Positions 25,397 to 48,300 of a stretch of DNA of 64,000 nt are shown in pieces; the stretch's first letter is position 1, and the number at the start of each line of letters is the position of its first letter. Made by a program: the position numbers and the translations under genes. Below the pieces are notes generated by a model. The model had not been told where the DNA came from, searched no databases, and worked only from the letters and a program-made list of their open reading frames with translations. The stretch lies in sequence record OM634661.1; one strand, 5' to 3'.

Positions 25397-25402
25397 AAAC
25401 AT

Positions 25403-25429
25403 AGGGGTCCTGTAAAGGGCCTCTTTTTT
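25403..25429 (+). terminator. Intrinsic terminator
   Basis: AGGGGTCCT-GTAA-AGGGCCTCT followed by TTTTT. Confidence 0.75.
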
Positions 25430-25447
25430 AATAAAGGAGGAGAAAGA

Positions 25448-25993: not shown

Positions 25994-25998
25994 ATAGA

Positions 25999-27222: not shown

Positions 27223-27242
27223 TATAAAATAGAAGATAACAG

Positions 27243-27273
27243 GGAGGGAGGCCAAATAGCTCCCTCCTTTTTT
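27243..27273 (+). terminator. Intrinsic terminator
   Basis: GGAGGGAG/CTCCCTCC stem followed by a T run. Confidence 0.8.
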
Positions 27274-27297
27274 CATTGGAAAGGAGAGTAAAGAGAA

Positions 27298-27825: not shown

Positions 27826-30800
27826 ATGGCAGGAAGTGAGTATGAACAATATGTAAATAGTCGTAAAGAAGATGAATCCTCTTCTGGTCTTGGCAATGCC
27901 ATTAAAGTTGGAGCGTTAATAGGTGCTGGGGCATTAGGTTACAGATATAGAAGAGAATTAGGTAGTGGGATTAGAACTCTAGGCGCTGGAGCTATGAGTG
28001 TAACAAACAGAGGTGTTGCAAGATTAGCAAGAAGTGAAACATTAAAAGATCGAATCTCACAAACAGGATCTTTCTTAAAAGCAATGGATCACGCTTTAGA
28101 TATGAAATCTCCTGTCTTCCATCTTCAAAACAGGCAGCGATTCAATAATCGTTTTGACGACTCTATGAGAAGAAGCCTGACAGAACTTGAAAAAAGAAAA
28201 CAAGGTGTTATGCGAAGAACGCCTACTCAAATTGAACAATCATTAGATACTCTCAGACATAATAGAAAAATGGGAGACTTTATGACTGAAAGGGCATTAA
28301 GGTTTAATGCTTCTATGGATGCATTGAATAAAAAAATGCCAGACAGAATGCAAGGCGGTCTTAGAGATATTCTCAACAATATGTCTGATGACTTCTTTAA
28401 TGATCCGTCTAAAGGTAAGATAAGAGGTCTCTTAGATTCTTATTCTCCTGAAAACGCAAAGAAAAATAACTTTGCTTTCAATATACCTATCAAGTCAGAT
28501 TCAGAAAAGAGTCAGTTTATTGATGAGATGTTTGAAGTTCTTGATACATTCAGGGACACAAAGGCTCTTAGAAAAGAAGATGTAAAAGCTTCTAAGAAGA
28601 AAATGAGAGACAATATGTATGACGGATTTATGCGTCAACATAAAAAAGAAGACACCTTCTTTACCAAGATGATGGAGAAGCAAGGGTGGAAGCAAGCCAC
28701 TGTTGAAGATCTATTAATGCATAAGACAGGCGGCAAGATGGACAGTGGATCTATCAGGCTTCCAAAGAAAGATGGTTCTCATTTCGAAGCAAGAATGAAC
28801 AGTAAACTAAGCAAATTGATGAAGCTAGATCCTAAAGTAGGGGATCTGATTGCTGATCCAAATCTGTATGTAAACCCTAGAGGGGAAATGCTAGACCTCA
28901 GAAAAGCAGCTGAAACAACATGGAAAGGTCTTGCTGGGTTCAGGGATAATTTCCAAATTCCATTCTTACGATTTAACCCACTAGATTTAATGCACTTCAC
29001 ATCATTCCAAGCAGTTAAGGAAGCACCTCAAACATACTTTATGCGAAGAGGTACGATTGATGTTAAGACAGGTATTAGCAAAAACATAGAAACTGTTAGA
29101 CATCCTATGGCTCATAACCAAGATGCAAAGGTTGGACCATTAGGAAAAGAATATGTCTACATGAGTGGAAATGTCTATGATGTAGGAAGCGGGGATCTTG
29201 TTGAGACAGGTAAGTATCTAGCTTCTGGTCGTTTCGGTATGTATCCTCGTGCTTTATCTGGAATGGCAAACTTACATAGACAAGATTATAGAGATAGAGG
29301 ATTCTTAGGCAAGCTATTTGATGTAGGTAAACAAGAGAATGAAGCAGTATGGTCAAGAATGGCAAGTACTGTTACGAAGTTTAAAGACGAGAATTGGGAA
29401 CGTAATTACAAAACCCTGATTGCAAGCGGAAAGACAGAAGAAGCTTATAAGAACGTATATGCAATGCTTGAACAGCATACAACCCCTATGAGTGATGACA
29501 CAATATCTCATATCTCTTCTCAAGTTAAGAAGGCATATGGAAAGTTAGATATAGATATTGAAAATATGAAGTCACCTGAAGAGGTAATGACAACTTTAGG
29601 TAAGCTAAATGAAGCAACCATGCTTCCTAACTCTGGAGTTGTTCAGAATAAAGAATTAAGCTTACAGATCAATCAGTTCTGGGCGCAGTATAGAAATAAT
29701 CCAACAGAGTTTATGAAGAACCAGAGAATCAAGACTGATCATATGCCATATGTACCAGAAGCACTATCAGCTCTTGATATGCACGAAACAAATATGATCG
29801 ACAAACTAGATGACGTAAAGAGACTTATTCATCAACATGCAATTGCACAGGTTGAATTTGCAAACTCAAGTTCATCAAAAGTAACGGTTGGATCTTTAGT
29901 AAGAGAAGGTATTCGAAATGGACAGTTAGAAACAAATGCAATGTCTGAAGTAAGAGGATTAGATGTTCTTACTTCTATGAGATCTTATTGGGACGATGTG
30001 TATAAAAATGGTCCTCTTGAAAAGAATGCAGCGCTTGATCAATTTGCAAACACTGTAATGGATGAATCAAAACCATTCGTTCATGCACTTGATCAAACCA
30101 TTAAAGAACAGACTCCTTGGTACTCAATGGGTACAGGAGACTCACCTCCTCAATACTTTGGCTATGTTGGATATCAAACAATGGATAAAGCCAAAGGTGC
30201 TAAGTGGATGCTTGAAAACTTTAACAAGCAATATCAAAATGGAGAGTCTCCACTTAAAGCTGGTGTAAATTCATTAATGGGAGTATTAGGTCAGCCATTT
30301 GCTGGTCGTAAAAATATTCAAGATGTCACAACAGCAACCCTTCCATTCTATTACTTTGCAGAACGTCTAGATAACGCTATTTCTCAAGCAGGTCTTGGTT
30401 TATCTCAACAAAACAGGGGATCAATGCAGAGCATCTTACTGAATCAATTTGGAAGACGAATCATACTTCCTTATGTTGCTTATAAGCAAGCACAGTATCT
30501 TGATGATATGACAGGTGATGTTGTAAGTGACAAGCTTGGAGAAACTTATGCGAATATGCATGAGGATGTTGGAAGGATTAAAGAGATATTCGGACTGAAT
30601 AAAATCGGTGAAGATATTGCTTCTATACTTCCTGGTATTGAACAATTGAAAGAAATCACACCTATTAAAATGTTTAACTTTGCGACAATGGGTGCTTTCT
30701 TTGATAATAGGTCTGGTGAAGAAATCAGAGAGTATTATGAAGATGGGGAAGATCCTATTAGGAAAGGTCGTTTCTGGGGTATTGGATCAGGTACACCTTG

Positions 30801-33800
30801 GCAGGGCGGAAAGATAGATCGTTTTGAACCAAACTGGTACAGAAAGATGAAGTCTGATTACCAATACACAGATACGATGTATGGAAGCTCTTCAGAGTAT
30901 TGGGCAAACCACTGGATGCCTACATTAACACATCCATTTGCTCCACTCAAACATTTCTTACTAGATCCTAACCATTGGGCGAACAAGCACAAAGATGACA
31001 GACCTTATCCAGTCACTGGTGGAATTACAGAGCTTGAAAGTATTCCTTTAGTCGGTCCTTTATTAAATGCAACAGCAGGAAGAATTATTAATCCGACAAG
31101 AGTTGATCCAAGACTCGAAAAGAGTCATAGGGAATACTTAAAAGAAGTCAATGAACATATCAAGTCTCAATATGACCAAGCAACATCTGGCGGCTCACTT
31201 CAATTCATGCCAGCTGGTGGATATGAAATTATTGATGGAAATCTTGGTGGAGGCGAAGCTGGAAGCGGAGAAGGATATGGATACGGAGATGGCAGCGGGA
31301 CTGGAACTGGTGGAGGAGATGGCACACCTGTTGTTACCTCTGACGATATTGGTGGAGGTAGAGGTTCAACTGGTGCTTCTGGTGATTTAAGAGCAAGTCT
31401 TGCCATTATGAACAAAGCTTATTCTGAAAATGGAGGACCAGCACTAGGCTCTGGAGGAAGTCCTATTAGATCAATTACTGGACTAAATGACTTGAGAGAT
31501 CCTGATATGGTATCTGATTTAAAAGATATTGGACAGATTACAGATGCATCAGGAATTGCACGAGATGCTTTCTATAGCCTAAGTGAGGTTGCTGGTATCT
31601 ATGGTTTCTCTGTTAAGGCAGCCACTGGATTTGAAGAGGGTGGAAGAGGAACAACACTTGAAAATGCATCAAGAATGACAAGCTATGCAAGAGCATGGTG
31701 GGATCTTGAAATGGGCGGTATGGGTGGACAGCTATCAGAGATTGGTAGACGTTATGTTCCTCGTGACCCAAATAAAAGATACTACAATCCAATAAGAAAC
31801 CAAATGCCAGACTGGATAGACAAAATTGTCCAGTATAAACTCTTTTAATTGCTGGGAACCCCTTAGAGCCATTAACACCACAACGTAGCTGGTGACAGCA
31901 AGCGTGATGGTTTAAAAAGATAATGGATTGGGCAATCAGCAGCTTGACTTAATTTAATTCCCATGTAATGATATGGTAAAGTACTTCGTATGTGAAAAAG
32001 GAGGAAATACTATGGATTACAGAATAAAAGATATGAGAAATAAGAAATATGGAAGGCTTACTGCTTTGAGGTATATAGAAACCAGAGCAGGTGGAGCATA
32101 CTGGATGTTTAAATGTGACTGCGGAAATGAGAAGATCATTAACGGCTCAACAGTAAGATGCGGTAAAGTGAGTTCATGTGGTTGTCTTGCTAAAGAAGTT
32201 TTTTCTAAAAAGATCACTAAGCATGGAATGGCAAATACAAGGACATATAATATATGGGTCGGTATAAAACAGAGATGTTTAAATCCAAAGTCATCTGCGT
32301 ATGAAAACTATGGAGCTAAAGGAATAACAATTTGTGAAGAATGGATGGATTTTGAAAAGTTCTTTGCAGATATGGGTGAAGCACCTGAAGGGTTCACTAT
32401 TGAAAGAATAGATAATGAACTCGGTTATTCAAAAGTAAATTGCAAATGGGCAAATCGCTCAGAGCAAAATATAAATAAATCATACAAAAACAACACTACT
32501 GGTATGAAAAACATATCTTACAATAAAAGAGATGATGATTACTCCGTTGGTATTTGCAGAAATAAAAAGAGATATAGAAAGAACTTCAAAAATCTCGAAG
32601 ATGCAATCAAATGGAGAGACTCTCTCTTAGAGGAATTAAATAGTTGAGTTCAACGACTAGAGAAAGGGAAGGTCTTGAAAAAGGCAAACCGAGTATCGTA
32701 CAGCCAAGTGGTGTCCACCTTTCGTAATAAGAAAGAATTGCTTATAAAAAGCATAGGGCTTAAATGGAAAAAGAGAGGGCTAGATATTCTAGCTATGATA
32801 TAGTCTAGTCTACATGGAAAGCATGTAGCAGTTCATAAGAGAACGGCAACGAAGTAACGACTCGTTGTGAATGTAACGGCCAGGAGTAGAATACTTTACT
32901 GATTTCCAACATGGTGATCCTTTTGTAAAAGTAGCAAAGGGTGAAATGAGACTCCCAGGAGAAGCATATGAAACCCTAAACAAATTACATCCTGATGCAT
33001 TTGGAGAGTATGGCGCATTTGATAGATTTAAAATATTAGCAGATGTTGCTCCTTATAGTAGTCAATATAAATTCTACAAGGGCGTTGTCTCACAAATGAA
33101 CCAAGAAGGTCTCCTTGATGAGTCAATGCAAAAGCAATACAAGAAAGTAAGAGATCAAGTATCAGCTAAAAAAGATAAATATAACTTCTATAATAGAAGA
33201 TTTGACAATGCAGATATTTATCAAGAAGAAGTAACAATCACAAAAATTATAGATCAAAACACATTTTTGACAAAAGAACATCCAAATAATCCAATTAAAT
33301 TAGCGGGCGTTAGTATTAAAGCTGATGATGAAGAAACACAAGCATGGTTGAGTCAGTATATCTATGAAGGTGCTACAGTTAAAGTAGGATTAGATTCTGA
33401 TCCTTTATATAGAGTCAGAGATGACATGATGAATACAATGAGAGCTGTTGTATATGCAGGTGAAAGATCAGAGGGTATGCCTTTCTACATGTCAGAAAAA
33501 GGGCAGAACTTAAACTATATGCTTGCCAATAGATCTTCTGGTGGATTCATGGGTATTGGTGGAGAAAAAACTGTATCTGTTAAAGACGATGGTAGCGCAA
33601 CTTCTACTCAAGCCTTATATAGTAACGATCAAATCACAGTAGGTAAGATATGGGAGTACTTAACTCATGACATTCTTCCACAAGCACCAATTGTAGGAAC
33701 AGTGGCTGATAAGTTCTTACAGATCAGAAGTCCACTTGAAGAATATAAGAGAACTCAGATTTACGGTAAGGCATGGAAACCTTGGGAAGAACCAATTAGC

Positions 33801-34979
33801 GGATGGGTAGAACCAATGCTTGATACAATCAGAGAGAGACATCCTTTAGTGGCAGCAGCAGAAGGTTATGGAATCGGATGGTTGTTTGGAAGAAAAGGAA
33901 GAGGTAAGTATTATGGCAAATGGGTCGGAGCAATTATTGGTGGAGGATTAAGTGCTTCTAGGGTATTCGGTGAAGCGATCAGTTCCATGACTCCAGGCAA
34001 AAGCGGATATGATGATACATGGATGCCAGAGAGAAGAAGAAAAGAACGAGAGATTAATGAGTATTTTGATAGATTAAAATACATGAAGTTCAAAGGTCTC
34101 TATGAGAAGACAAGGCAAGAAGCATTAAAGCAAGAAGGCATTGATATTGAAAAAGTTATCGGTGATGGAGCAAATAAAGGAAAGCAAAATAAGCAAGAGA
34201 GAAGATTTGCTGATAGCGTAAAAAAATGGCTTTCCATTAGCAAAAAGATAGGTTATGGTGATGAAGAACAAATAAAATCACAATTAAGTGAAATCAGAGA
34301 TAGAATGAAAATCATAGATGAAGACAGACCTAATGTTGAAATTGGTCCGTTAGCAATGCTTGCTTTAAGATACAAAGCGGAATATGAGTCAACTCTTTAC
34401 GGAGCAGATCCAAATGGAGACATGACAAAAATATTCAGAGCATTACCTTCTAAAGATAGAGAGTTCTTCACTGAGTTCATGAAGGCTGCACCTGGAGAAA
34501 GAGAAGAAATCTTACGACTTGTTCCTAAAGATCAAAGAAGATTCTACCAAGCAAAATGGGGATTGGACACAGATGAACCTGAAAGCTTAGGATCTTACTT
34601 CTCAGACCACTACTTACCTGATGCAAATTGGGAAGGGTGGAAGCCAAATATTGATCTAGAAAGTATTAAATTGAAAGTTGTTAAAAATGAAGCACTTGAA
34701 TTAACAGAGTTCGGATTATGGGGCGATGATGAAAAAAGAGCAATGGAATCTGGTGTAGATAGTATTGATATAGATAGACCAACATTAGGTTCTAGAATTG
34801 ATGTAGGAAGAATTGAAAATATCCTAAGAGGCTCTGGTTTAAAAGACGTATCTGTATCCATGAACGTTTCAAGTGGTCAATCAGAAAGTAAAGTAGATAT
34901 TGGTATGAATATACTTAGAGATAGAACAGAAGAGCTTGCAAGTGAGATTAAGGAAAATATATCTAGTATATTCTCTTAA
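27826..34979 (+). CDS. Tape-measure-like protein, two exons (27826-31817 and 32879-34979), 2030 aa after splicing
   Basis: Joining TGG AT|G CCA gives NQMPDW-M-PGVEYFTDFQHGDPF in frame with the 677-aa ORF. Follows the chaperones; helical; hydrophobic segment near the C-terminus. Confidence 0.8.
31818..32878 (+). mobile_element. Group I intron (1061 nt) carrying a homing endonuclease
   Basis: P1 ACTGGAT/GTCCAGT with U31817-G31828 wobble; P element AATTGCTGGGAA; Q element AATCAGCAG; R element GTTCAACGACTAG; S element ATGATATAGTCT; P9 CTACATG/CATGTAG; terminal G at 32878. Confidence 0.93.
32012..32647 (+). CDS. Intron-encoded HNH homing endonuclease with AP2-like C-terminal domain
   Basis: ATG 32012 after AAGGAGG; CDCG...SCGC; WVGIKQRCLNP...TIERIDNELGYSKVNCKW; NNTTGMKNISY...FKNLEDAIKWR. 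Confidence 0.88.
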   Translation: MDYRIKDMRNKKYGRLTALRYIETRAGGAYWMFKCDCGNEKIINGSTVRCGKVSSCGCLAKEVFSKKITKHGMANTRTYNIWVGIKQRCLNPKSSAYENYGAKGITICEEWMDFEKFFADMGEAPEGFTIERIDNELGYSKVNCKWANRSEQNINKSYKNNTTGMKNISYNKRDDDYSVGICRNKKRYRKNFKNLEDAIKWRDSLLEELNS

Positions 34980-35002: not shown

Positions 35003-38000
35003 ATGGACAAAAACAATCTTGTACAAAGATATGGCGGTGTCTCAGGCGATATAGTCTGGGATAGCCGCTCTCCTTCTAATTTCTCGAACACAAATAGTGC
35101 AGAAAGAAATGAAGGAGCACAGACTGCTGCAAAAGCGCTTAATGAATTAGATTACAATTCAAGTGCATATAAAAACTCATTAGGTATCTGGAGTCAAGTG
35201 AATCCAGCTAACCCTTTCCAAAATAATGGACAACAAGCCATTCAGGGATTAATGAATATGAAGGAAGGTTCTGATGTCTTTGTTTATGATACAGAGATAC
35301 TAGGAACAGCACCAATGCATAGAAAAAGAAATAGTGTCGATTTCTACACTCCTACAGAAATTGCAATACAGCATACGAAGTTTATTAATGGAAAGTTGCA
35401 AACAGTAGAAAATAGCAACCGATCTCTTCTTATTCAACCTACAACAGATGTGTACAACAAATTAGATGATCTTATTAGGCAAGCAGCAAAAGGCAGATGG
35501 GTTGGTATGACAGATGACCAGCGCAGAACCCTATCGGATTTGACTCTGTATTCAGGTGATGCATCAGAGTTATTTGACGTACAAAATGTTCATGGACGAA
35601 AGATTGTTACTGTTAAAACACAGAACAGAAAAGTTCATCCTTTACAGGGAAGTGTTCTTTCATCTTCTAAAAATATTGCGAGAATGCAACAAGGACTAAA
35701 AAACTTAATGGAGTTTGGAACAGCACCTAAAGACATGGCATGGGAATTAAATAGATTTATGCAAGGTACAACAAATGCAATGTTTGCAGGTTACAACGTT
35801 CATAACTTTGATCAACCTATGATGCTTGATTATCTAAAGAATACTGTAGGTAAGTCATTAGGTAAAGACAGCGTAGCTCAAAGATCATTAGATAAACTCT
35901 ATACAGCTATGTCAGCAACACAAGTAGATGCATTCTCTGCTATTAAGACATTATACAAAGATCCTTTTAGTCGATTTGGCGCTAGAACAACACTTGAAAG
36001 AATGGATGAATTGATTAATGGAAGTAAAAAGAGAGATGGGTCTCGTATCGCTCACTTTGGTCTTTCTGATGCAAAGGTAACAGTAGATACCTTTAATAGT
36101 ATATTAGCAGATAATAATGTTTCAAAAATGATCTCTTCTGGAGGTAAAGCAAGAATCCCAGGATACGGAACATGGACTTCTAAGAATATTGAAGTAGGAG
36201 ATTTATTATTCGGTAAAGCAGGTCTTAATAGTCATGATTATGACGGTGTATACAAAAGAAGAGGCGGCGTATTAGAGCCAGCTTACAATATTAAAACAAA
36301 CAATATCTATAGAAATACAACATATGAAGTAAAGAACTTCTTTGATGGTGTTGAAATTGATGGGAAGAAAATGTTTGGGGTTCAATTATACAACCAAAAT
36401 GATGATCTGCATCATACTATTTTTAGAGATAATATGGGTGAACTTCAAAAAGCGATTCATGGATCTTTAGAGCCAGCTAACAACAAGACGGATGCTATGA
36501 GAAGAACAGCTTCAAGACTTCAAAACGAAGATAGAGCACTAAGAAGATGGAGAAAAATGTTCTCTACAGAATCTGGCGGCGGTATGGATTTAGCAACTAG
36601 ACTTTATAACGCACTTGATATTGAAAGAGATGTTCGTAAGATAGCTGCTCAAGAAGGATTAAAAGACGAGAAGCTAATCAAACAACAGATTGACCAAATG
36701 ATTTTAAAGAACAATGAATGGAATACAGATGAATTTGTTCGAGACTACCACACAATGAAGGGTCGATTAAAGCATGAAGAAAGCTATGTAAGAAGCTTTA
36801 TGAACAAAGTACAGTCTAGTGAAATTGGTGGAGATACACCTTCAGCCAAAAGAGCACAGAATCTTGCAATGGCAAACTTCGGAAAGCTTCTTGATCAAGA
36901 GTTTGGTGTGAATGAGTACAAGAGAAAGTTACCAGCTGGAAGCAGAGCCTTACCAATCAACATGAATGGTGAAACTCAGTACTTAAATATGAATGGTGTA
37001 GAAGGATTAAAGAGACAAATGTATGGATCTCTTTATAAAGGTCATGTATCAAAACCAAATCCAAGTATCGTTAAGCAGAGATACAAAGAGCTTCTTGGAG
37101 AATTAAAAACAACCAATGCAATTAGTGCAAAGAAATATGAAGAAGTACTAGGTGCTTTGGATCATATAAGAAGTGGAGATTCCCTAGACAACTTATTAAC
37201 AGAGCTTTCAAACGAAGTCATGAATGAAAGAGACAGGAACTCTAAGCTTGGTCTTTCTCATATACCAGCTGAAAATCCAACTGGTGTAAACAAAACAAGT
37301 GAAAGACACAGGAATGTGTCAAAAGCTCTGAAGTCTGGTGAAATGGAAAAAATCATGGGTAGAGCTATTAACTCTGTAGATGCTTACAATATGCAGTGGG
37401 ATGGCAAGACACCAGTTCGTTTCTTAGGAAAAGAAGTAGAAGAAATGATGGATATCCATGACAAAGCAATTGGTAATATACTAAGCGACTCTGGTATTAA
37501 TAAAGATGCTCGTATCGGATTTGAAAATGCCAAAAACTCTAGATCGTCTTTAACAAAATTAGCACAAGCATTTGTGAATAATGGAATGCATGTTCAGTTT
37601 AGATATAACGAAGTAAGTAAAGGTTTAGTTATGGCACTTGCTTCACAAAAAGTTTCTGAATCTGTATTAGATGGATCTCTAAATGATTTAATGAAGAATA
37701 ATAATGTAGCGACAGTAAACCTTCCTAGAATGAATGAAGATGGAACAATTACACTAGGATCTCAGAACAGAGTAGCAAGACTTACAGCTCAAAGAAGTAA
37801 AGATGGGAGCTATCAGGTTGTCACAGCATTTGATGAAGTTATTCAATCATTAATGAGAGCAGCTCCTTTTGCTAAAGATCAACTTGAAATGGCAAGTGCA
37901 ACAGGCAAGAAGAATGGAATGCTTCGTATTGATAGCACATTGAATAGAAGAGCACGACTTGCGATGCAGAATCTTTCCATGAATAACAAAAAGATGAACA

Positions 38001-41000
38001 ACTCAGATATGGAAGACATGTATAAAACAGGATCTAGATTAGCGAACTGGATGCGTGGAAGAACAATAGACATCTCTGCATTTGCAGAAGAATGGTATAC
38101 AAACTTCTATGAAACAGCTTCTGATAAAGCTAGAAGAGAAATGAGATTGTCATCTCCAGATCGAATTAAGGCAAATATGCAATCAGGTGATTTGTTTGTA
38201 AACTCTATGGGTGTCAATGCAAGACGTATTTTCCAGAGACAGGTAGACGGCTGGTTAAGTGAAAACTTTAATATCAACGTAGATATGCACTCTGTAAAAG
38301 ATACTCATGTATCAAACTATATTCGTGCCACAGCAGATACAAGGCAGTTAACACCATTTGGATTCTTTAACCCAATGGCTCGTGAGAACATTATGAAATC
38401 TGTTAACTATCATCACCTAGATGGCAGTACTGTTAGGCAAAACCTACTAGCACGTAACTTTAGTGAAGATCGTATTGATCGAATCTTAAACAGAGGGGTT
38501 GTCACAGACAAAGCTTTAGAAGTAATGGGCGATGAAGTAGGATATCTGAATCTAAGAGCAGCATACATGGATGATAAAAGCATAGCTGAAAGAGCAACTT
38601 CTTTAAAATCTACATATGAAGAAAGAGCAAAGAACCCGAATCTTTCTGAAAAAGAAAGAGCTAAGTATGCTAGACTAGCGAAATCCATTGGTACGGCAGA
38701 AACGATCTCTACATTTGATGGTATGTTTATCATGGCTGATGACGTTGCTTCGGCATTTGAAATCAAGCGTGAAAAGAATATTAGAATATCACCAGGAGCA
38801 GAACTAAACAGTGCCATTGTAGATAAAATGAAGAAACATGTTGAATCTATGGGTGGTACATTTGATCTATCTCAAGATATGTCTATGGATGTAAAACTAA
38901 TTGGCAATGGAGTAGCAAGAGGAAAGAATGGCTCTATCACGATTAGTGACATTGCAAAAGATGATACATTCAGAAAACCAGTTGATGTATATGATAAATG
39001 GAGTAATGATGTCCGAATTAAGAAATGGGATGCAAAAGAAAATGTACTTGTATTAGAAGACACTGTGAAAACAGGTAACTCTACAAAGTTTGTTTCTGAT
39101 GCAGGACATCGTGTAACAAGTACAATTCTTCCAAGAGAAATTGTTGAAGCACTTGCTGGCGGTCAAGCAGATACAATCCTACCTGCTTTTGAAACAAGTA
39201 AGAGCCAGTGGGGAACTGAAATTAACAAGTATGTTAGCTTAGCTGTAGATGAGGCGAAGAGACAAGTTGAGTCTGGGAAATTAACAGTAGGTAAACTGAC
39301 TAAGGAAGAAACTACTCAGACTGTACTAGAACAAATTAAAGGCATGATGAGTAAGAATATTTCTAGGGAACTAGAAAAAGAAGCACTTGTTAAAGAAGGA
39401 CGAATTGTTCTATCTGATACATTTGGTATTGCTGGCGACAATGAATTAAGTATCGGATCAAGGGTCGATGCACAAGGAAGAAGACTTGGCGGATTGAATG
39501 GATTCTTATCTGATGTAGACAAATTGCTAGGAACAAGTTTCCAAGGTGGCAAAACCATTTTTGGTCAGGTAGGAATGGGACTACAGGATGTATACAATTG
39601 GGAGGACAGAATAGGTCTTTCTAATGAGAATTCAGCTGGACTTGTTAAGTACGGAAGAAAAGAAGCTGATATGATTTCCTCAAGAGCAAGAGCAGTATTA
39701 GGAGAAGAGAGCGCAGTAAGTACATGGCTTAATTCTCATATTAGAAATGCGGCTACAGCTCAAAAGAAAGATATTGAGAGAATCGGAAGCGGTCTTGTTA
39801 GAACCATTATAGAAGGAAGAGATGTTACTCCAAGTAGTGGAGATGTTGTTATTAGAACAACAGGAACAGCATTTGAAGCAGATAATATTGGTAGAGTGAC
39901 AGATCATGGAGTCAGAGAAATATCCATGAATGCAATTGATAACTTACCAGAAGTTACTCAAAAGAATCAAAAGTTCACTGTTCAAGATTACAACAGAACA
40001 ATACTGAACTTTGGTCGTACAGAAGGAACTTTTGGAGATGGATTGTCTTTTTCTGATTCTATTAAACAGAACAAAGGAACTGCTCTACTTGAAATGCCTG
40101 ATGAAACATTCTCAAGAAAATATCTAAGATTAATAGACTTTGGAGATCCTGCTAATAGAGCCATTGGTACGACTCCAGTAATGGAAGAGCTTGAGAAGGG
40201 CGCTCAGCAGATCTGGAGAGGCATTAAAGAGTATCAAGCTGTTGGGTCTAATGATAGCTTAACGCCTCAAGAAAGGGAGTCTAGGGTTAATAAGATTAGA
40301 GAGAACGTTGAAAGATCTATCTCAGACTATGAGGGTAAAGTAGCTCATATGACAAGTTCATCAAGGGACGGAAGTCTTGAGAAAAAACTTGGTTCTGCAA
40401 AGATGGATATGTCAGGTCGTTTTAGAATCCAAGGTGTAAGTCCATTTGCAAACTATGAAAAATCAGGAGATGGAACTTGGAATCAAGTTGGTAAATATCA
40501 AGAAGGCCATGTCTATATGAGTAGGCAAGCAGTTGGTGAAATGATTGATGGAGCAGAGAAGAATATTGCTTCTCAAATCATGGGATTGACCAATGAAGAA
40601 ATTAGTGGTCATGGACGCAATTTGAAGTCGAAAGTTCTTGATTATGTAAGAGATAATGGTTTATATGGATTTGTAAACCGTTACCCAACAATTAACCAAT
40701 CAACAATACAAGCAATGAAAGTATCTATTGATGAGTCAATGTCTTCAAAAGACAGAGGCGCAAGGTTAACTGTTGGAACAGCAGCAAGACTTAAAGCCGA
40801 TTATGACGGTGACTTCTTATCTACAGTATTAGCTCATTATAGTACAGATAATGCTAAAGCAATTCATGAAGACTTAGCGAAATTGCAACATGAAGAGCAT
40901 AGAGCAGGTCTACAAAGCGCACAAGGTGTTATGGATGACCTAGTATCAGATATTGATGTAAAAGCTAAACAGATGAACCTGACTGTTGGAGAGTTGATGA

Positions 41001-42307
41001 AGAGTCATGATGAAAGACACATTGATCTAAGAAATCAAATGATTGGTGCTAGAACCACAAGAATGGATGCTTTAGAATCAGCAGAGGCTCGTCTTGGTAA
41101 AGAATTCATTGGCTTCGTAGACAATACACGTTTTAAAGTATTGACACTGGCTCAAGCAACATATGAAACACTTCAAGAAACAACTGGTCGAAATGGTTCT
41201 CCACTTATGACAGGTCAAGAAGCAGCTAGAAGAAGAGAAATAGTTGAAGAATTCGGAAGAACATTCTCTCAGGATTTAATCTCTTCTAAGAAGTTTAGTG
41301 CAGAAACAGTAAAAGAATCTGTATTAAAAGTAAATCCTAGCTTATCTGGAATGGATCTTGAAACAGAAATCGAAAAGCAGATGTCACAAAGATATCAAGT
41401 CGTTGCATCTATGAACGAATCTATTTTAAATCCAACAGAGACAAACTTGCAGAAGTTCAGACAGGGAAATGAAATACTTGGTCTCTTTGATACTTCTACA
41501 CAGCAAGGTGCAGACAAACTAGACAACATGCTTTCTGAGATTCAATATATAAACAAATTAAATAGTAGTGCAGGAACAAGCACATCTGGTCCACTCAACA
41601 ATGCATTCTTAAAAGTAGGTCTTTCAGAAGGAAGTTCATTTGATCATCTTAGAAAGACATTGAGTGGTCAAGGCAACATGGTAATACCAACAGATGCTGT
41701 TAAAAATATTATGAGTATTGCTGATCCAGAAACAGCGGGTCAATTAGAAGAAGGTATTGGAGTCTACAAAAAGTCTCTTATTACAAACCTAGAAAGAATG
41801 AGCGGGAACCAAGATACAATCATGGATGCAATCGGTAAATCTCATTCTCTTGAAAACGAACAACTTCTAAGTAATGCAATGGCAGCAGATGAAGCTGGAA
41901 CAAAATTAAGAAGTGTTGTTGGAAAAGTAATGCCTGGTGGAATACATGGCGGTGGAGTGATGGCTGGTGCAGCAACATTTATGGGGCTATGGGCAACAAG
42001 TGCTTTAATGAGAAGTGGGCCAACACCTGAGTCTATGAAAGAATCAGCTCCTGCACCACCACCAGTTGAAAACCTTGCACAAAGCCAACCAACAGCACGA
42101 GTTGCTGAAAATGGCGAACATGTGAATATTCGAATATCTGCAAAAGATGCAAAGAATATGTCACAAGAAGACATAGCAGCTCTTGTTCATCAAGAAGTAA
42201 GTGGTATGTCAGGTATACCTATGAATATCAATCTAAATACAAACGACAACTTACAGAGAATCGACAAGAACTGGCTTCAACAAAAATTCTCAGATGCTAT
42301 GGGATGA
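35003..42307 (+). CDS. Candidate single-chain two-barrel virion RNA polymerase with N-terminal DEDDh exonuclease
   Basis: Exonuclease motifs D96-T-E98, D270, H351-x4-D356. Beta-like FDG (1238-1240) and K1362-x5-G-H-R1370. Beta'-like DMSGR (1802-1806), NRYPT (1892-1896) and ADYDGD (1932-1937). Hydrophobic helix near the C-terminus. Confidence 0.8.
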   Translation: MDKNNLVQRYGGVSGDIVWDSRSPSNFSNTNSAERNEGAQTAAKALNELDYNSSAYKNSLGIWSQVNPANPFQNNGQQAIQGLMNMKEGSDVFVYDTEILGTAPMHRKRNSVDFYTPTEIAIQHTKFINGKLQTVENSNRSLLIQPTTDVYNKLDDLIRQAAKGRWVGMTDDQRRTLSDLTLYSGDASELFDVQNVHGRKIVTVKTQNRKVHPLQGSVLSSSKNIARMQQGLKNLMEFGTAPKDMAWELNRFMQGTTNAMFAGYNVHNFDQPMMLDYLKNTVGKSLGKDSVAQRSLDKLYTAMSATQVDAFSAIKTLYKDPFSRFGARTTLERMDELINGSKKRDGSRIAHFGLSDAKVTVDTFNSILADNNVSKMISSGGKARIPGYGTWTSKNIEVGDLLFGKAGLNSHDYDGVYKRRGGVLEPAYNIKTNNIYRNTTYEVKNFFDGVEIDGKKMFGVQLYNQNDDLHHTIFRDNMGELQKAIHGSLEPANNKTDAMRRTASRLQNEDRALRRWRKMFSTESGGGMDLATRLYNALDIERDVRKIAAQEGLKDEKLIKQQIDQMILKNNEWNTDEFVRDYHTMKGRLKHEESYVRSFMNKVQSSEIGGDTPSAKRAQNLAMANFGKLLDQEFGVNEYKRKLPAGSRALPINMNGETQYLNMNGVEGLKRQMYGSLYKGHVSKPNPSIVKQRYKELLGELKTTNAISAKKYEEVLGALDHIRSGDSLDNLLTELSNEVMNERDRNSKLGLSHIPAENPTGVNKTSERHRNVSKALKSGEMEKIMGRAINSVDAYNMQWDGKTPVRFLGKEVEEMMDIHDKAIGNILSDSGINKDARIGFENAKNSRSSLTKLAQAFVNNGMHVQFRYNEVSKGLVMALASQKVSESVLDGSLNDLMKNNNVATVNLPRMNEDGTITLGSQNRVARLTAQRSKDGSYQVVTAFDEVIQSLMRAAPFAKDQLEMASATGKKNGMLRIDSTLNRRARLAMQNLSMNNKKMNNSDMEDMYKTGSRLANWMRGRTIDISAFAEEWYTNFYETASDKARREMRLSSPDRIKANMQSGDLFVNSMGVNARRIFQRQVDGWLSENFNINVDMHSVKDTHVSNYIRATADTRQLTPFGFFNPMARENIMKSVNYHHLDGSTVRQNLLARNFSEDRIDRILNRGVVTDKALEVMGDEVGYLNLRAAYMDDKSIAERATSLKSTYEERAKNPNLSEKERAKYARLAKSIGTAETISTFDGMFIMADDVASAFEIKREKNIRISPGAELNSAIVDKMKKHVESMGGTFDLSQDMSMDVKLIGNGVARGKNGSITISDIAKDDTFRKPVDVYDKWSNDVRIKKWDAKENVLVLEDTVKTGNSTKFVSDAGHRVTSTILPREIVEALAGGQADTILPAFETSKSQWGTEINKYVSLAVDEAKRQVESGKLTVGKLTKEETTQTVLEQIKGMMSKNISRELEKEALVKEGRIVLSDTFGIAGDNELSIGSRVDAQGRRLGGLNGFLSDVDKLLGTSFQGGKTIFGQVGMGLQDVYNWEDRIGLSNENSAGLVKYGRKEADMISSRARAVLGEESAVSTWLNSHIRNAATAQKKDIERIGSGLVRTIIEGRDVTPSSGDVVIRTTGTAFEADNIGRVTDHGVREISMNAIDNLPEVTQKNQKFTVQDYNRTILNFGRTEGTFGDGLSFSDSIKQNKGTALLEMPDETFSRKYLRLIDFGDPANRAIGTTPVMEELEKGAQQIWRGIKEYQAVGSNDSLTPQERESRVNKIRENVERSISDYEGKVAHMTSSSRDGSLEKKLGSAKMDMSGRFRIQGVSPFANYEKSGDGTWNQVGKYQEGHVYMSRQAVGEMIDGAEKNIASQIMGLTNEEISGHGRNLKSKVLDYVRDNGLYGFVNRYPTINQSTIQAMKVSIDESMSSKDRGARLTVGTAARLKADYDGDFLSTVLAHYSTDNAKAIHEDLAKLQHEEHRAGLQSAQGVMDDLVSDIDVKAKQMNLTVGELMKSHDERHIDLRNQMIGARTTRMDALESAEARLGKEFIGFVDNTRFKVLTLAQATYETLQETTGRNGSPLMTGQEAARRREIVEEFGRTFSQDLISSKKFSAETVKESVLKVNPSLSGMDLETEIEKQMSQRYQVVASMNESILNPTETNLQKFRQGNEILGLFDTSTQQGADKLDNMLSEIQYINKLNSSAGTSTSGPLNNAFLKVGLSEGSSFDHLRKTLSGQGNMVIPTDAVKNIMSIADPETAGQLEEGIGVYKKSLITNLERMSGNQDTIMDAIGKSHSLENEQLLSNAMAADEAGTKLRSVVGKVMPGGIHGGGVMAGAATFMGLWATSALMRSGPTPESMKESAPAPPPVENLAQSQPTARVAENGEHVNIRISAKDAKNMSQEDIAALVHQEVSGMSGIPMNINLNTNDNLQRIDKNWLQQKFSDAMG

Positions 42308-42334: not shown

Positions 42335-45300
42335 ATGCAAACTATTCAAACTCAGATTAGATCAATTAGAAAAGAATCAAGTGAAGCGGTCTGGAGAATT
42401 TCTTATCTAGACCCTTCGCTCCAGTCTTATGTTGAAGTTTCTATGGGAGAAGGCGGAGATGTTAGAATAGGACCTCGATTATCAGAGGTCTTATCTGATA
42501 TCGAATTTCAAGCGAAGAGTTCTTATCCTATCAATGCAAATTGGATGGAAGATGATCCAGACAATTTATTCTCCGTAAAAAGCTTTAATGATATCGCTGT
42601 TTCTATTGAGATGGAAGTATCAACATATAAGGCTTATAGAAACAAGCAACGTATTCAATTAAAAAGAGAAATGTCTATAGAAGAAAGTGTTCCTTATTCA
42701 GAAAATGAATTCGGAGAAGAAGAAGATGCGATTGAAACACTTTACATACCAGAAGAAAAAGATACGAATATCAAACAAAACAACTTAAGAGATTCTAGTT
42801 ACTTCCTTGTTGGTAAGGTTGGTCGTGTTATTGATGGAGATACAATTGATCTTATTGTTGAAAGAAAAGGAAGTAAGGTTAAGGGTTCTGAATTTGAAAA
42901 AGGAAAGACAGTTAGAATCAGATTCTATGCAACACAAACACCTGAAACAAACAAAGCAGGGGATTATGACGAAAAGACAAACGCTGCTTATGCAAAGAAA
43001 TATAAGATTACAACAAAAGATGCTTATAAGATTGCAGACGAGGCCAAATCATTTGTTCAAAAACAATTGGGTGGTGCTGGTCTTATTGTCGTAGATTTAG
43101 ATACTGATAAAGATGGTAGGCTTAAAACAACATATGGTCGATATGTCGGTATGGTCTATAAGACAAGAGAAACAAATGCTGAGAATGTCTTTAGAAATCA
43201 AGGGAGCATTGCGAATAATATCAACAAAACAATTTTGATAACAGAATCAAAGAAAGTTCCAGGCACTCCATTAGGAACAATTAATAGTGAATTTGTATCA
43301 AAAGAATTTAGCCGTTTTGATGGAATGGTATGGGAAGCAGAACTTGGTCTCAACGCAACAAAGACAAAGCATGTTGGATCTGTAGGAAGCCTGATTGATC
43401 AAAAAGATCCTGATGGTGATAGTAAAAGATTAAATATGAAGACAGTGAATATTAAGTACGAAGAGGCTCCTAGTAACTTAATTGACTACATAGAACCTAA
43501 TGATGATAGAGCTGAAAGTAGAGCAAGTGATGCTTTATCAGAATACAGAGTGAGAATTGGTGACGTTGATCTAGTTATTCCTCCTCTATCTATTAACTTA
43601 AACAGAGCTTCTAATTTGCAAAAAATTAAAACGTTGCGAAGCAAATCTTCTATTATTACAAAAGTAGGTAGCAGTACAGAACACATTACGCTTCAATTAT
43701 ATTTTCATGATCTTGATTCTATTAACGGTAAAAGAATCAAAAGACATGCAAAGCTAAAAGACCAATACTATTACATGGATGGATTAAGACCATTGATTGC
43801 ACAGTTTAAAAAAGCTCCATTCCTTCCTATTGATAATGAATATATAAATGAAACGCTAGGTATTCACAACGTAGCTCTTGTCAATTTAACAGTATCAACT
43901 GTACCAGGATTTCCTCATTCATTGTCAGCGACTCTTGTTCTTGCAAAATTTGAACATGAAGCTTTCATGCCACAAGTTGAATTCTTAGGAAATGCTATCA
44001 ATTATCCTTTACTAAGATGGTATTACCAAGAAGCAATGGTTGATAACGGAAGTCCATACCGAACATACTTGTCTCCAATTGAGGGAGAACTAACAAACGA
44101 CTTTACGTTCTCTATTGCTGATGAAGATCAGCTTGCAGAAAGAAAAATGGCAATACAAAAGATTCGAATGATGGAAAATCCATTAACATATAAAGAAAAG
44201 ATTGATAATAAGGAAACAGAAATTGGTCGCTTAATTTCTGATGGTAAAAAGATAGAAGTGGCCTTGAAGCAATGGGAGCGATATCTAAATGTTAAATCAA
44301 AAGGATTACTTCCTAAAGTAGATGAGATGGGATATATTGAGCCAAATGATACATTAAGTCCTAAATCCCCAAACCCTAAAAGCCGACAAGCTTGGAAAGA
44401 GATCTATGAGAGCGAAGCTATTGCTTCTAAATCTAATGCAAGATTCTATCCAGTAGAGAGTCAAGAATTCCAAACAACAATGATGCCTGAACAATATACA
44501 AGAGAAGAATATAGAAGCTATTTTGGAGATCATAAAGCTGAAGGGTTTATCATGATCGGTCTTGATGGGGCGGCAAATAAAGAAGCTCTTCCAAGTTTCT
44601 ATCAGGATGTTGGTGGTAATAAAGACACGACAAATTCACCTTTATACTATATTCCAATGAGTCAGCCATCTTATGCACAACAAATCTTATCAAGAGCAAA
44701 GAATGCAGAGTTAAGCGCAAAAAATTATATTGATGAGTACACAGAGACTCAAAAGATCATTAGAGCAACAGAAGGAGAACTTGATCTTGTTGATTACCCG
44801 ATTGATGGATTGATTCTAACAAATATTGATGTCATGTATGAGAACTCTTTCAGTACAATGCATATACAAATGAATGATGCACCTACTAATCAATATCTTG
44901 GATCACAAGATCCTTATGTACAAGTAAAGTTTGAAGCAACTCAAGATGCTGTTAGACAACTAAAGGATTTATTGCAAACAGTAGATCGCTACTCTAAAGA
45001 ATACAGGCTTGGAATTACATCTGGATTTATGGGATTAGATAATCAATTAACAAATCTATTTGGAGTTAGAACTGTTCTTGCAGAAAATGTTGGTATTAAT
45101 ACTGTACCAGGATTCCCTGGCAGATTCCAAGTAGAGATGACACTTTGTGGATTCAATAAGACTCAGAAAAGAACAGAAGAACTTGAAGGTATATCACCTA
45201 TCTATGGTAATTCTTCAAAGGCAGATAGACATGCAAAGAATTACAATGCAGCAGTAGATAATGCCATTGTTGAAATGAAGATGAGAGACCTTGAAGTTTA

Positions 45301-48300
45301 TCCAGATTTAGAACTTCCAACTTATGATGAGTTAAATGCGGCACTTCCTTACATTTCATCTGGTGCTAAAAAGATTCCTAATTACTTAGGAAACAAGTAT
45401 GTTGACCCTGACTTCTACATCGCAACGCCGAATACATTAAGAGAAATGGTCAAAGAGATGAGAGAGAAAGAACATAAGATGCAGCTTAAAGACATGATGG
45501 GTGTACAAATGTACACAAGTAATCAGATGTCAGGACCATTAGATGGAGATGCTTCGATGTGGAGTCTCTTAAATAATGTAGATGAATCAGTGCCAGGTAT
45601 TAAAGCGGGATTCAATTGGGGCGGCGAAACAAGTTCGTCTGGTGGATCTTCTAAGGATGGCGGTGTATTCAAAAGCAAAGAGGTTCAAAAGTATGTAGAG
45701 GATAAGAAGAAGTTGAAAGAACCACCTACTTTGCAAGAATGGTCTAAATGGGGATATGGAACAACACCTAGTCAGTATCTTGCATGGAAAGAGAATCCTC
45801 ATCCAGAAGAATGGCAGGTATACAACCTAATATATCAAATGGTTGATACTAGATGGTTAAAAGCTGGTCTAGTCTTTAATGATAAAAAGAAAAGTACAAA
45901 GGCAATTGAAAAGGTCACATACTCTAAGAGAGATGATCTTTATAAGGTGAATTGGAATTACTTAGCTGATCAAGATCCAAGTCAGATTAAGAATGGTAAG
46001 AAAGTTAAGATCGGAAAGTTATCCAAGCAGGATTTTAGATCTACTAATAGCAAAGTAACAAGAGAGCGTATTGCAAACTTGATTAAAGCCATCTTCCATG
46101 TGAGAAGTGGATGGAAGCAATTCTACAGTAATGGATCTCCAATTTTCAGAGGTGGAGAGAACTCTGCTGGTATCGGAGGTGTTCCTCTAGGAGCAGAAGC
46201 TGAAGGTGTTTCAGAAGCTAAAAGACTTCTATGGGATTGGAAATATAATATTACATTTGCAGTAGATCATCTATTTAAGATGTATAAACAAGCAAATAAC
46301 AGTAAGGATCTCAATAAGAAATCTAGGCCTTGGGATTACATGATTCAAGGATATGCAACAGGAAACACAGATGGAGAATTGAAAAATTCATTTGTTGATG
46401 CAGTATATGCAAAATTTGATAGACAGTACAATGATGTAAAGGCGAAATATGCAACACCATCAAGCCCAATGAACTTGAAAGCATTCCAATATAAAAACGG
46501 CTTAAGTGATCATGACATTGCTGTTATCAAGGGAGATAAGGGAGCTATCATTGATGAGCTTCTATCCATTGGATATAGAGAAGTGAAAAGCACAACTCTT
46601 ATTATCTTTAAAGAGTATTATTCTAAAGCAGAAACAAAAAAGATTTTGGAAAAGAAAAGTGCAACAAAGCTGAAGAAGATACTAGATGATTACAGGCTAG
46701 ATAAGTATGGAAGCGGAGAAAGTTACAAGGAACCAGCCAATTCATATTTTGATCCAAACTTTAGTAATATTTCACAAGCTAAAGGGGCAAATGCTGATGA
46801 AGATGAGTATTACAGATATCAGAAATATATCGAAGCTGGAGACTACATTGACAATGCAGATGGTAATAGACTCGTAAATACAGATGATCCTCAAGAATTA
46901 TTTAGAGAGATGTTTGTAGATATGCTTGATTATGATCATAGATTTAGATTGCTTCGTGCATTCCCTACTTTCCAAATGTTTATTATCGAAGAAGGAAGAT
47001 GGATGGCAAACTATAGACTGTGGGATAACCTTTATGGATTTAATGCAATACAATCTATAGATGTACATAAAAATAGAAAGATTGCCGCTGACACAGCGAT
47101 TATCACTATGACAAATGTATATAACAATCTAAGAGCACGATCTATGGATACAAGCTACAGCGAGTGGGATTACAGCTTCTGGGATAACCTTGTCTTAGGA
47201 AATCCAAACGAAAAATTATTAGAAGCTAGAAAAGAATTACTGAGTAACATGATGCTAGAGCCAGGTGCTAGAATCCATTTAAGAATGGGATATGGATCAA
47301 GCGTACCAAATTTACCTGTTGTCTTTAACGGAACAATAACAGAGATGGACACAGAAGAGCTTGTAACAGTTGTTGCTCAAGGTGACGGTATTGAATTAAC
47401 AAACGTGATCTCTGGAGATCCTGATGATAAGAACAGAAGCTGGATTGGAACTATTGAAGAACCAAGAGACTTGATCTGTAACTTAATGACAAGTAAAGGT
47501 AACTGGTTCAAAGATGTAATCAACTGGACAAGTGGAAATACATTCTTCAAAGACAATCCATTAGGTGTACAACACTTTGGAATGCCTGGTAAAACACCAC
47601 CAGCAAACTTTGTACCATTCAATACTGATTATGGGGAAGCTGCTCAGAACATTTATTCTTCAAATGGAATACCTACATTTAGCCAATGGACTTATGAAAA
47701 TGGGGAGTCAATTCCATTCTCATTTGAAGGAGGAAACCCTTGGAGATGGATACAACCAGGTGATGAAGATAACATACTTCTTAGCTTCTATCTGAATACA
47801 ATCTGGGATATTACACAAACGATTGCATATTGTTCACCTGATTACGTTGCAGCCGTTCATCCATTTGAAACAAGAAGTACATTGTTCTTTGGTAAACCAT
47901 ACTGGAAGATGGCACATAGATATAGTAGCTCATACGAGTATGATTCTGGATCAAAACAATGGCTCAGAACTTTAAACACAGAGCATAGAAAACCATATAT
48001 GCAATTCCATTACTTAGATGGATATATGGACATTATCTCTAACAGAATCAAAGCAACTTCAGAAAATATGTATACAAACGTCATTGTGAACTATGACGGA
48101 AAACAAACAGAAACAATTTATGCTGATTACGACATTCATTTTGCAAAACAAAAGACAACTGTCATTGATGCGAAGATTGTTTCAAGAGCAAAAGGGATTG
48201 ACTTCTGGACATCTGAGAAACAGGCATTGTATTACGGAGCAAGTGCTCTTAGAGATTACATGAAAGATATGTATCAAGGAGAGCTAATTGTACTAGGAAC

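Follow-up and report, generated by a model that had tools for sequence, protein, structure and literature searches.

The first 64,000 nucleotides (nt) of Bacillus phage vB_BauM_KLEB27-3 (the window analyzed here, identical to bases 1 to 64000 of OM634661.1) contain a tail-module gene, gp034, whose 2,434-amino-acid (aa) product (UNY39803.1) joins an N-terminal DEDDh exonuclease domain to a single-chain module resembling the two-barrel RNA polymerases (RNAPs). Membership of gp034 in the two-barrel RNAP superfamily is well supported, and polymerase activity is predicted from conserved residues and a structural model. We propose that gp034 is probably a virion-delivered transcriptase, which would be packaged in the particle, ejected at infection, and used to make RNA on the entering genome. 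The KLEB27-3 genome comprises 216,671 bp; the host is Bacillus australimaris, and the isolation source was a Lithuanian karst lake. Because tail-sheath genes are annotated in its record, we take this jumbo phage to be contractile tailed.

The gp034 reading frame runs for 2,434 codons without interruption, and a ribosome-binding site (AAGGTGAAGG) lies 4 bases 5′ of the ATG. A preliminary description of the window, made from its letters without database searches, had singled out a series of motifs in this frame, and a script located every one of them where it had been placed. These were FDG at aa 1238 to 1240 (nt 38714), KFVSDAGHR at aa 1362 to 1370 (nt 39086), DMSGR at aa 1802 to 1806 (nt 40406), NRYPT at aa 1892 to 1896 (nt 40676), ADYDGD from aa 1932 (nt 40796), the candidate exonuclease residues D96, E98, D270, H351, and D356, and a hydrophobic stretch, GGVMAGAATFMGLWATSALM, from aa 2317 (nt 41951). 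A further FDG at aa 447 is regarded as meaningless.

Relatives of gp034 were collected by an exhaustive HMMER search with aa 1150 to 2050, which returned 42 clusters at 50% identity. Overall, homologues form approximately 60 clusters (2,366 to 2,759 aa) in jumbo-phage contigs; apart from short fragments and one distant member of 2,759 aa, lengths range from 2,366 to 2,564 aa. The short entries are collinear with portions of gp034 and retain DxDGD, and both polymerase halves lie in one open reading frame (ORF) in every full-length member. When the polymerase and exonuclease portions were each used in word-indexed searches, both retrieved identical giant proteins and no other architecture. The exonuclease-polymerase arrangement thus appears, from these searches, to be fixed: the relatives of either half are the same giant protein. 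All matches among contigs, isolates, and viral collections were phage-like or of unknown origin, with viral contigs of up to 264 kb, and no relative was detected in 185,579 bacterial and archaeal species represented by one genome each. Among 50,697 phage records, tblastn with the polymerase module found only Bacillus phage WH1 and phage Edson.

In an alignment of 44 family members with identities as low as 19%, 12 of the positions examined were the same in every sequence: D96, E98, D270, H351, and D356 in the exonuclease; K1362 in the β-like region; and R1893, P1895, D1933, D1935, G1936, and D1937 in the β′-like region. Position 1370 is Arg in 42 sequences and Lys in 2, position 1239 is Asp in 32 and Glu in 12, and G1240 is kept in 42 of 44. 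The DMSGR motif is looser (D in 32, G in 40, and R in 32). This pattern bears on the view that gp034 serves the tail or baseplate only as a structural component and carries inactive relics of enzyme folds. Such a view would fit a record in which gp034 is labeled as structural only, and a protein for which all Pfam, PHROG, and NCBIfam models stay under threshold. However, the five DEDDh residues, the metal triad, R-x-P, and the Lys are invariant in 44 of 44 sequences at 19 to 50% identity. Because a structural relic would lose such an invariance pattern, the motifs are not due to chance, and we consider this view extremely improbable.

One line of evidence for the polymerase came from the fold. 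From the 44-sequence alignment, AlphaFold2 built a model of aa 1000 to 2110 with a mean predicted local distance difference test (pLDDT) score of 84.1, a predicted template modeling (pTM) score of 0.82, and pLDDT values of 86 to 96 at all motif sites (86 to 94 at those of the β′-type barrel). A fold comparison of such a model had been suggested in the preliminary description. Run on this region with Foldseek, it gave 361 PDB matches at an E value of ≤1e-3, and the best 50 of these were RNAP structures throughout, the chains identifiable from their descriptions being β′ subunits. The top match was the nonvirion RNAP of phage AR9 (7S01 chain d; E value, 8e-7; identity, ∼15%), followed by cyanobacterial, Escherichia coli, mycobacterial, and phiKZ enzymes.

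Sequence comparisons pointed to the same barrel. Searched directly, gp034 gave a subthreshold Pfam match to RNA_pol_Rpb1_2 at aa 1877 to 1944 (E value, 0.015) and nothing useful from PHROGs (no match), NCBIfam, or PDB sequences; neither Pfam nor NCBIfam reached a curated threshold. Across the family, RNA_pol_Rpb1_2 (PF00623) was matched by 8 of 20 members (best E value, 1.9e-5) and is a precomputed domain on two homologues, P0053 and P0054. When aa 1780 to 1960 were used in a permissive tblastn search, annotated β′ genes accounted for 8 of the 11 weak matches outside the family, their source genomes being AR9-like jumbo phages that infect Bacillus, Staphylococcus, or Listeria. Profile alignment with hhalign matched the family to the β′-N protein of Staphylococcus phage Madawaska (probability, 86.7%; E value, 4.4e-6) across NRxP...DYDGD. 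In this alignment, D1933, D1935, G1936, and D1937 pair with the DYDGD of the AR9-like β′N, and R1893 and P1895, 40 residues ahead of D1933, pair with NRNPS. Against PDB sequences, the β′ match of the family profile was subsignificant. The catalytic motif of the AR9 RNAP is likewise DYDGD (PMC9209446). Fold, Pfam, and profile alignment thus back the β′-type catalytic barrel named in the preliminary description.

The same model was compared with predicted viral structures in BFVD. A member of the gp034 family was matched at a TMq of 0.62, and the second-best match was an uncultured siphovirus protein labeled “minor tail protein” (A0A8S5SD80_1; E value, 4e-23; TMq, 0.53; 1,161 columns; 12% identity), ahead of RNAP large subunits of phages and giant viruses. 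The siphovirus match suggests that the whole polymerase module occurs in other tail proteins. An uncharacterized protein of the Acinetobacter jumbo phage ME3 (A0A172Q021_2) was also matched, over 454 columns. Together, these two predicted structures hint that there may be more unannotated single-chain RNAPs in tails or virions.

The preliminary description also placed a β-type half upstream in the same chain. This part of the polymerase reading is supported by conserved K/R residues, the model, and weaker fold matches, and it is the weakest and least secure part. In the model, the β-like region forms strands at aa 1241 to 1245, 1254 to 1261, 1293 to 1298, 1337 to 1355, 1362 to 1365, 1370 to 1376, and 1391 to 1393; pLDDT is 92 to 96 at its motifs, and it belongs to one compact body (pTM, 0.82). 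BFVD fold matches of 500 to 610 columns include the poxvirus 132-kDa RNAP subunit, which we take to be a second-largest, Rpb2-type subunit. Eight positions are invariant in two-barrel RNAPs, namely, Rpb1 D-x-D-x-D, R446, and P448, and Rpb2 D837, K979, and K987 (PMC2919709). The gp034 family has candidate counterparts of all eight in order: D1933/D1935/D1937, R1893/P1895, D/E1239, K1362, and R/K1370. The eight-residue step from K1362 to R/K1370 is equivalent to that between Rpb2 K979 and K987 by order and spacing, not by alignment, and the second superfamily Lys (K987) is mostly Arg in the gp034 family. D/E1239, located 123 residues N-terminal of K1362, may correspond to Rpb2 D837 by order, no alignment to β having been obtained.

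At the other end of the protein, the motifs and the fold agree on the DEDDh exonuclease that had been read from the sequence. The AlphaFold2 model of aa 1 to 520 (pLDDT, 87.6; pTM, 0.84) matched TREX1/2, exonuclease I (ExoI), and ERI1/3 in the PDB (Foldseek probability, 1.00; TM score normalized to the target, 0.55 to 0.62; identity, ∼10%), as well as the exonuclease domains of B-family polymerases. Hsp70/DnaK structures ranked above these in the same search and were dismissed, with a TM score of 0.16 and a root mean square deviation of ∼20 Å. ExoI was also the best match of the family profile to PDB sequences, though a subsignificant one (E value, 0.038), and 2 of 20 family members matched Pfam RNase_T. 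Because all five DEDDh residues are invariant, the N terminus is very probably an active 3′-5′ exonuclease. E. coli ExoI aligned to the model over 398 to 493 columns (TM score normalized to the query, 0.28 to 0.34), that is, beyond the exonuclease domain proper, and the beta-rich domain and long helix at aa ∼390 to 520 may for this reason mirror the arrangement in ExoI. In this segment, G399, G407, D414, Y441, H471, and R514 are invariant or nearly so. For the linker that follows (aa 521 to 999), searches of families, PDB, and PHROGs came back empty.

Proofreading enzymes classically have a polymerase and a DEDDh exonuclease in covalent linkage, and the two-barrel module might accordingly be a DNA or repair polymerase with a fused 3′-5′ proofreader, by analogy with archaeal PolD, in which a two-barrel catalytic subunit is paired with an exonuclease subunit. 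PolD is homologous to RNAP large subunits (PMC7281927), and the sugar specificity of the module is not readable from its sequence. However, PolD is absent from the best 50 of the 361 PDB fold matches, all of which are RNAPs; the NRxP(T/S)...DxDGD signature and the hhalign match point to RNAP β′; and the phage encodes its own DNA polymerase III alpha, primases, and helicases. A DNA polymerase is thus, in our judgment, a very unlikely identity for the module.

The position of gp034 in the tail module was determined from eight loci, comprising KLEB27-3, WH1, and Logan and IMG/VR contigs of up to 264 kb, with Edson placed by match position. The conserved order is sheath, three tube-like genes, two paralogous chaperone-like genes, three giant genes that we call G1, G2 (the gp034 family), and G3, a cell wall hydrolase, and baseplate genes. 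In the loci examined, the giants measure ∼2,020 to 2,160 aa (G1), 2,415 to 2,515 aa (G2), and 2,320 to 2,450 aa (G3). Because this order is constant across loci, the tail-module location asserted in the preliminary description is solid. Two independent records label the protein as part of the particle: gp034 is a “structural protein” in KLEB27-3, and its WH1 counterpart is “virion structural protein_gp095.” From these database labels, we infer that gp034 is probably packaged.

These observations can be set against the view that gp034 is an unpackaged RNAP of the nonvirion type, expressed late, resident in the cell, and merely encoded in the tail operon. Nonvirion single-chain RNAPs do exist in Bacillus phages (YonO and 0305phi8-36 gp99), and gp034 is the sole RNAP-like gene of its genome: D-x-D-[GA]-[DE] was absent from all other ORFs with a length of 200 aa or more (250 aa or more in the first 50 kb), apart from an unrelated DPDGD in gp035, the G3 protein. 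Likewise, gp277 (746 aa), the sole large gene close to the right end and placed like orf99 of 0305phi8-36, had neither an RNA-dependent RNA polymerase (RdRP) match nor a DxDGD. On the other hand, gp034 invariably lies between the putative tape measure gene and the G3 and baseplate genes, both phage records carry structural or virion labels, and its giant size and conserved C-terminal domain parallel the virion enzymes of N4, crAss-like phages, and P23-45. Furthermore, a polymerase that first appears together with the late tail proteins would be available only after the transcription program needed it. Taken together, these points make an unpackaged enzyme quite unlikely.

According to the reading that we favor, gp034 would be made late, alongside the tail proteins, and incorporated into the particle, the tail lumen or the baseplate, beside G1 and G3, being the most probable site and its C-terminal domain the docking element. 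Delivered into the cell upon infection, it would transcribe the incoming DNA at a time when no phage protein has yet been produced, possibly held at the membrane via its hydrophobic helix, and might also help to pull the DNA in. The predicted active site would combine K1362 and R1370 from the β-like barrel with the Mg-binding D1933-x-D1935-G-D1937 and R1893-x-P1895 from the β′-like barrel. Later gene classes would be left to host RNAP redirected by two phage sigma factors. The exonuclease, strictly coinherited with the polymerase, probably acts on the same nucleic acid, either in preparing a DNA end or template or in trimming RNA 3′ ends. The tape-measure-fused virion RNAP of phage P23-45 and gp66 of crAss-like phages are precedents for tail- or virion-borne single-chain two-barrel RNAPs (PMC10770324). 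We also put forward, as a tentative proposal only, the more specific idea that exonuclease and polymerase form one coupled tail-delivered machine, in which the nuclease would ready the genome end or template or trim the transcript 3′ end. The module, given its fold-level match in the siphovirus “minor tail protein,” would then mark a wider and so far unrecognized class of tail-borne β-β′ fusion polymerases derived from the AR9-type phage lineage.

The genome plan of KLEB27-3 gives some indication of which polymerase is used when. The left arm, on the + strand, is structural, and small early and replication genes fill the right arm on the − strand, an arrangement also described for 0305phi8-36 (PMC2147016). 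Near-consensus sigma-A promoters are not enriched: 8 sites with at least 11 of 12 matches were counted, versus 16.6 in shuffled sequences.

Several results weigh against a virion-delivered transcriptase. KLEB27-3 has genes for two sigma factors (gp089 and gp210), so that host RNAP is certainly used at some stage, which tempers any independence from it. An extended −10 sigma-A-type promoter (TTTACA-17-TGxTATAAT) heads the early arm at OM634661.1 positions 216638 to 216610 on the − strand, 33 bp from the right end, and a perfect-consensus TTGACA-17-TATAAT lies further into the early arm at 144648 to 144620, also on the − strand. With a strong promoter of this type at the head of the early arm, host RNAP could start infection unaided. 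Scans of the early arm for direct repeats and enriched 10-mers found no phage-specific early promoter motif, only ribosome-binding sites. In the polymerase itself, the β-like half gave no sequence-level match to β or Rpb2 in Pfam (20 members), and tblastn gave only noise; hhalign of the gp034 family against aa 1 to 1200 of P23-45 gp96 showed no similarity (probability, 0.2%). Finally, in Moorella phage MTATph1 (OR602862.1, 17026 to 49658), where the tail-module order is as in KLEB27-3, the gene in the G2 slot encodes 1,309 aa that match the gp034 exonuclease region alone, and the C-terminal domain of gp034 has its match in a short ORF downstream. This locus lacks any DxDGD and has one transposase gene inside the G2 slot, which represents either a copy broken by one insertion or a polymerase-less variant. 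Because DxDGD is absent there, not every relative of this tail module requires the polymerase.

Some of the same results would be expected if gp034 were delivered with the DNA but its polymerase served mainly for genome entry (as a membrane-held motor for the 217-kb genome), for priming, or for one special RNA, with early mRNA made by host RNAP. The sigma-A-type promoter that opens the early arm, the two sigma factors, and the empty promoter motif scans favor this alternative, as do the hydrophobic helix and the anchor-like C-terminal domain of gp034. Coupling of an RNAP to DNA entry was moreover raised as a possibility by the authors of the 0305phi8-36 and P23-45 studies (PMC2147016; PMC10770324). 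However, the scarcity of sigma-A consensus promoters would make a second polymerase useful for early genes, the known virion two-barrel RNAPs transcribe pre-early genes (PMC10770324), and the hydrophobic segment is weak as a membrane anchor. We therefore regard an entry or priming enzyme as unlikely and retain early transcription as the preferred role.

The C-terminal hydrophobic helix deserves separate comment. One had been claimed for gp034, and a Gly/Ala-rich helix is indeed present at aa 2317 to 2336, but its hydrophobicity is moderate (best 19-residue Kyte-Doolittle mean, 1.32), and we rejected it as a secure transmembrane segment. Each giant protein of the module has one moderately hydrophobic, Gly/Ala-rich helix of this kind: gp031 at aa ∼19 to 39, gp033 at ∼327 to 345, gp034 at 2317 to 2336, and gp035 at ∼2203 to 2226. 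Those of gp034 and gp035 lie ∼100 residues before the C terminus. These helices may be membrane-inserting segments of ejected proteins.

Relative to known systems, gp034 is closest in function and position to the virion RNAP of P23-45. Like gp034, P23-45 gp96 is a single-chain two-barrel RNAP within a giant polypeptide, linked to the tape measure and encoded among the tail genes of a long-tailed phage; it is believed to reach the cell together with the DNA or before it and to transcribe pre-early genes (PMC10770324). In contrast to gp96, gp034 is encoded by its own gene downstream of the putative tape measure gene rather than fused to it, carries a DEDDh exonuclease, and comes from a contractile-tailed jumbo phage of Bacillota; a nonvirion RNAP partner was not found in KLEB27-3 by ORF signature scans. 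As a separate gene product without profile similarity to gp96, gp034 stands outside that type.

By descent of the catalytic barrel, the nearest relatives appear, from fold and profile matches, to be the AR9-type multisubunit phage RNAPs. The AR9/PBS1-like and phiKZ-like enzymes (among them AR9 gp270, the β′N of the nonvirion RNAP in 7S01) gave the best fold and sequence matches to this barrel, belong to jumbo phages, several of them of Bacillota, and in AR9 share the DYDGD loop. Their subunits, however, are distributed over four or five chains whose genes lie outside the tail module, whereas gp034 is a much reduced β- and β′-like core in one chain, joined to an exonuclease and encoded in the tail operon.

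Phage phi14:2, a crAss-like podovirus, offers another giant virion protein, gp66, with a single-chain two-barrel RNAP and a DxDxD loop by which it was first spotted. It has no exonuclease, and the β′ half of gp034 is nearer to the multisubunit-type enzymes according to Foldseek and hhalign; a piece of a crAss-like giant protein was only a weak BFVD fold match (E value, 4.5e-3). YonO of SPbeta and 0305phi8-36 gp99 are also single-polypeptide two-barrel polymerases, and of Bacillus phages, but these are nonvirion enzymes of ∼800 aa related to the RdRP family PF05183. No gp034-family member out of 20 matched PF05183 at an E value of ≤1, so gp034 is not of the YonO/RdRP type, and unlike 0305phi8-36, KLEB27-3 has no recognizable YonO-like polymerase.

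Three further comparisons are more distant. The coliphage N4 virion RNAP, which sits in the capsid of a podovirus, is a functional analogue only: it is a giant protein with a central polymerase, has terminal domains for injection and encapsidation, and transcribes the early genes before host RNAP is used later. Its T7-like fold, with an RRM-fold palm domain, is unrelated. NCgl1702 of Corynebacterium glutamicum is a 2,169-aa β::β′ fusion of a mobile element (PMC2919709, PMC7824862). As in gp034, this giant, fast-evolving chain has β-like and then β′-like motifs and large regions of unknown function; unlike in gp034, no exonuclease or tail context is reported (PMC2919709, PMC7824862). It was absent from the gp034-family search matches and was compared by description only, and it is a conceptual precedent. 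E. coli ExoI, TREX1/2, and ERI1 share the fold and all three DEDDh motifs with the gp034 exonuclease, at ∼10% identity, but the gp034 domain shares its chain, a phage tail protein, with a polymerase.

Neither an exonuclease-RNAP fusion nor the gp034 family was found described in the papers searched, including a 2021 comparative survey and a 2026 jumbo-phage review, in line with the novelty suspected in the preliminary description. If exonuclease and polymerase do act as one coupled machine, gp034 would be, to our knowledge, the first RNAP with a covalently attached proofreading or processing exonuclease. Virion-delivered two-barrel RNAPs are known from few lineages, namely, the multisubunit phiKZ/AR9 type, crAss-like gp66, and P23-45 gp96. 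The gp034 family would be a fourth solution, a minimal (∼1,100-aa) β-β′ fusion whose catalytic barrel is nearest to AR9-type enzymes. It is distinguished by its permanent DEDDh exonuclease, by a giant gene of its own between the putative tape measure and the baseplate in contractile-tailed jumbo phages of Bacillota, and by being invisible to the standard annotation libraries used. The proposed role would make gp034 the sole phage-encoded RNAP in a jumbo phage that otherwise reprograms host RNAP with its own sigma factors. An active enzyme would provide a compact single-chain core of cellular-type RNAP for structural and evolutionary work on how small a two-barrel enzyme can become, a system in which to examine the coupling of genome entry to transcription in Gram-positive hosts, and perhaps the first case in transcription of a polymerase paired with an exonuclease. 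Enzymatic cargo is also apparent in the conserved three-protein block (2,000 to 2,500 aa each) of the tail module, which is more than purely structural.

Coordinates of gp034, its predicted parts, and neighboring tail-module genes in the 64,000-nt window (identical to OM634661.1 numbering)
Feature	Position (nt)	Strand	Basis
gp034 (UNY39803.1), 2,434 aa; G2 of three giant tail-module genes	35003..42307	+	Intact ORF; record label “structural protein”
DEDDh (DnaQ-like) 3′-5′ exonuclease domain, aa ∼36-380; motif I D96/E98, motif II D270, motif III H351/D356	35108..36142	+	Invariance; fold
Beta-rich domain and long helix, aa ∼390-520	36170..36562	+	DSSP strands 390-475, helices 478-519
Linker or unknown region, aa 521-999	36563..37999	+	Scattered conservation (R588, E592, H819, P908)
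Single-chain two-barrel RNA-polymerase-like module, aa 1000-2110	38000..41332	+	AlphaFold2 pLDDT 84.1, pTM 0.82; fold matches
β-like barrel region (less secure), aa ∼1238-1395; [D/E]1239-G1240, K1362, R1370 (K-x7-R)	38714..39187	+	Conserved residues; model; fold matches
β′-like catalytic barrel, aa ∼1798-1945; DMSGR 1802-1806, NRYPT 1892-1896, DYDGD 1933-1937	40394..40837	+	Invariance; Pfam; hhalign
Gly/Ala-rich hydrophobic helix, aa 2317-2336	41951..42010	+	Kyte-Doolittle; F2326, W2330, S2333 near-invariant
Conserved C-terminal domain, aa 2337-2434; candidate virion/tail docking	42011..42304	+	P2340, P2342, R2366, E2372, D2415, N2416 invariant
G1, putative tape measure gene: gp031 (27826-31848) and gp033 (32946-34979), with HNH gene gp032 (32012-32647) between	27826..34979	+	Position; alignment to relatives
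G3, gp035, 2,326 aa; always adjoining the gp034-family gene	42335..49315	+	Synteny; phrog_20474, E value 6e-214
gp036, lytic transglycosylase (SLT); variable cell wall hydrolase slot	49329..50459	+	Pfam SLT, E value 1.4e-30

Upstream of gp034, the putative tape measure is interrupted in KLEB27-3: gp031 (1,340 aa) and gp033 (677 aa) correspond to the N- and C-terminal parts of single proteins of 2,023 to 2,041 aa in relatives. The intervening gp032 was assigned as an HNH endonuclease by a PHROG match (E value, 4e-66), and a weak group I intron match (RF00028; E value, 0.036, under the Rfam threshold) lies between gp032 and gp033. The interruption is possibly an intron with a homing endonuclease. 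A second split-gene case occurs in the DNA polymerase III alpha gene (OM634661.1, 146335 to 150705), which consists of two coding sequences with an HNH endonuclease gene between them.

Downstream, aa 815 to 2286 of gp035 account for its strong phrog_20474 match, a family labeled “endolysin.” Weak nuclease-like matches cover aa 143 to 286 (phrog_452 endonuclease, E value, 2e-8; NCBIfam EcnA, E value, 2.8e-4, far under the cutoff), and aa 1 to 800 gave no match to PDB sequences. Judging from these matches, gp035 also seems to bear enzymatic cargo. The hydrolase slot occupied by gp036 encodes an M15 peptidase, a glucosaminidase, or an amidase in relatives.

Elsewhere in the window, the chaperone-like genes gp029 and gp030 (26743 to 27804) encode paralogues with 33% identity (E value, 4e-13), and their WH1 counterparts are labeled “tail chaperonin.” Two annotated tail sheath genes (621 and ∼502 aa) and three consecutive tail tube genes at 20715 to 26721 make up an unusually redundant tail core. 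The large terminase encoded by gp010 (5296 to 8250) is, at 984 aa, long for its family. Annotated genes in the window are all + strand, and each 2-kb bin has a positive GC skew.

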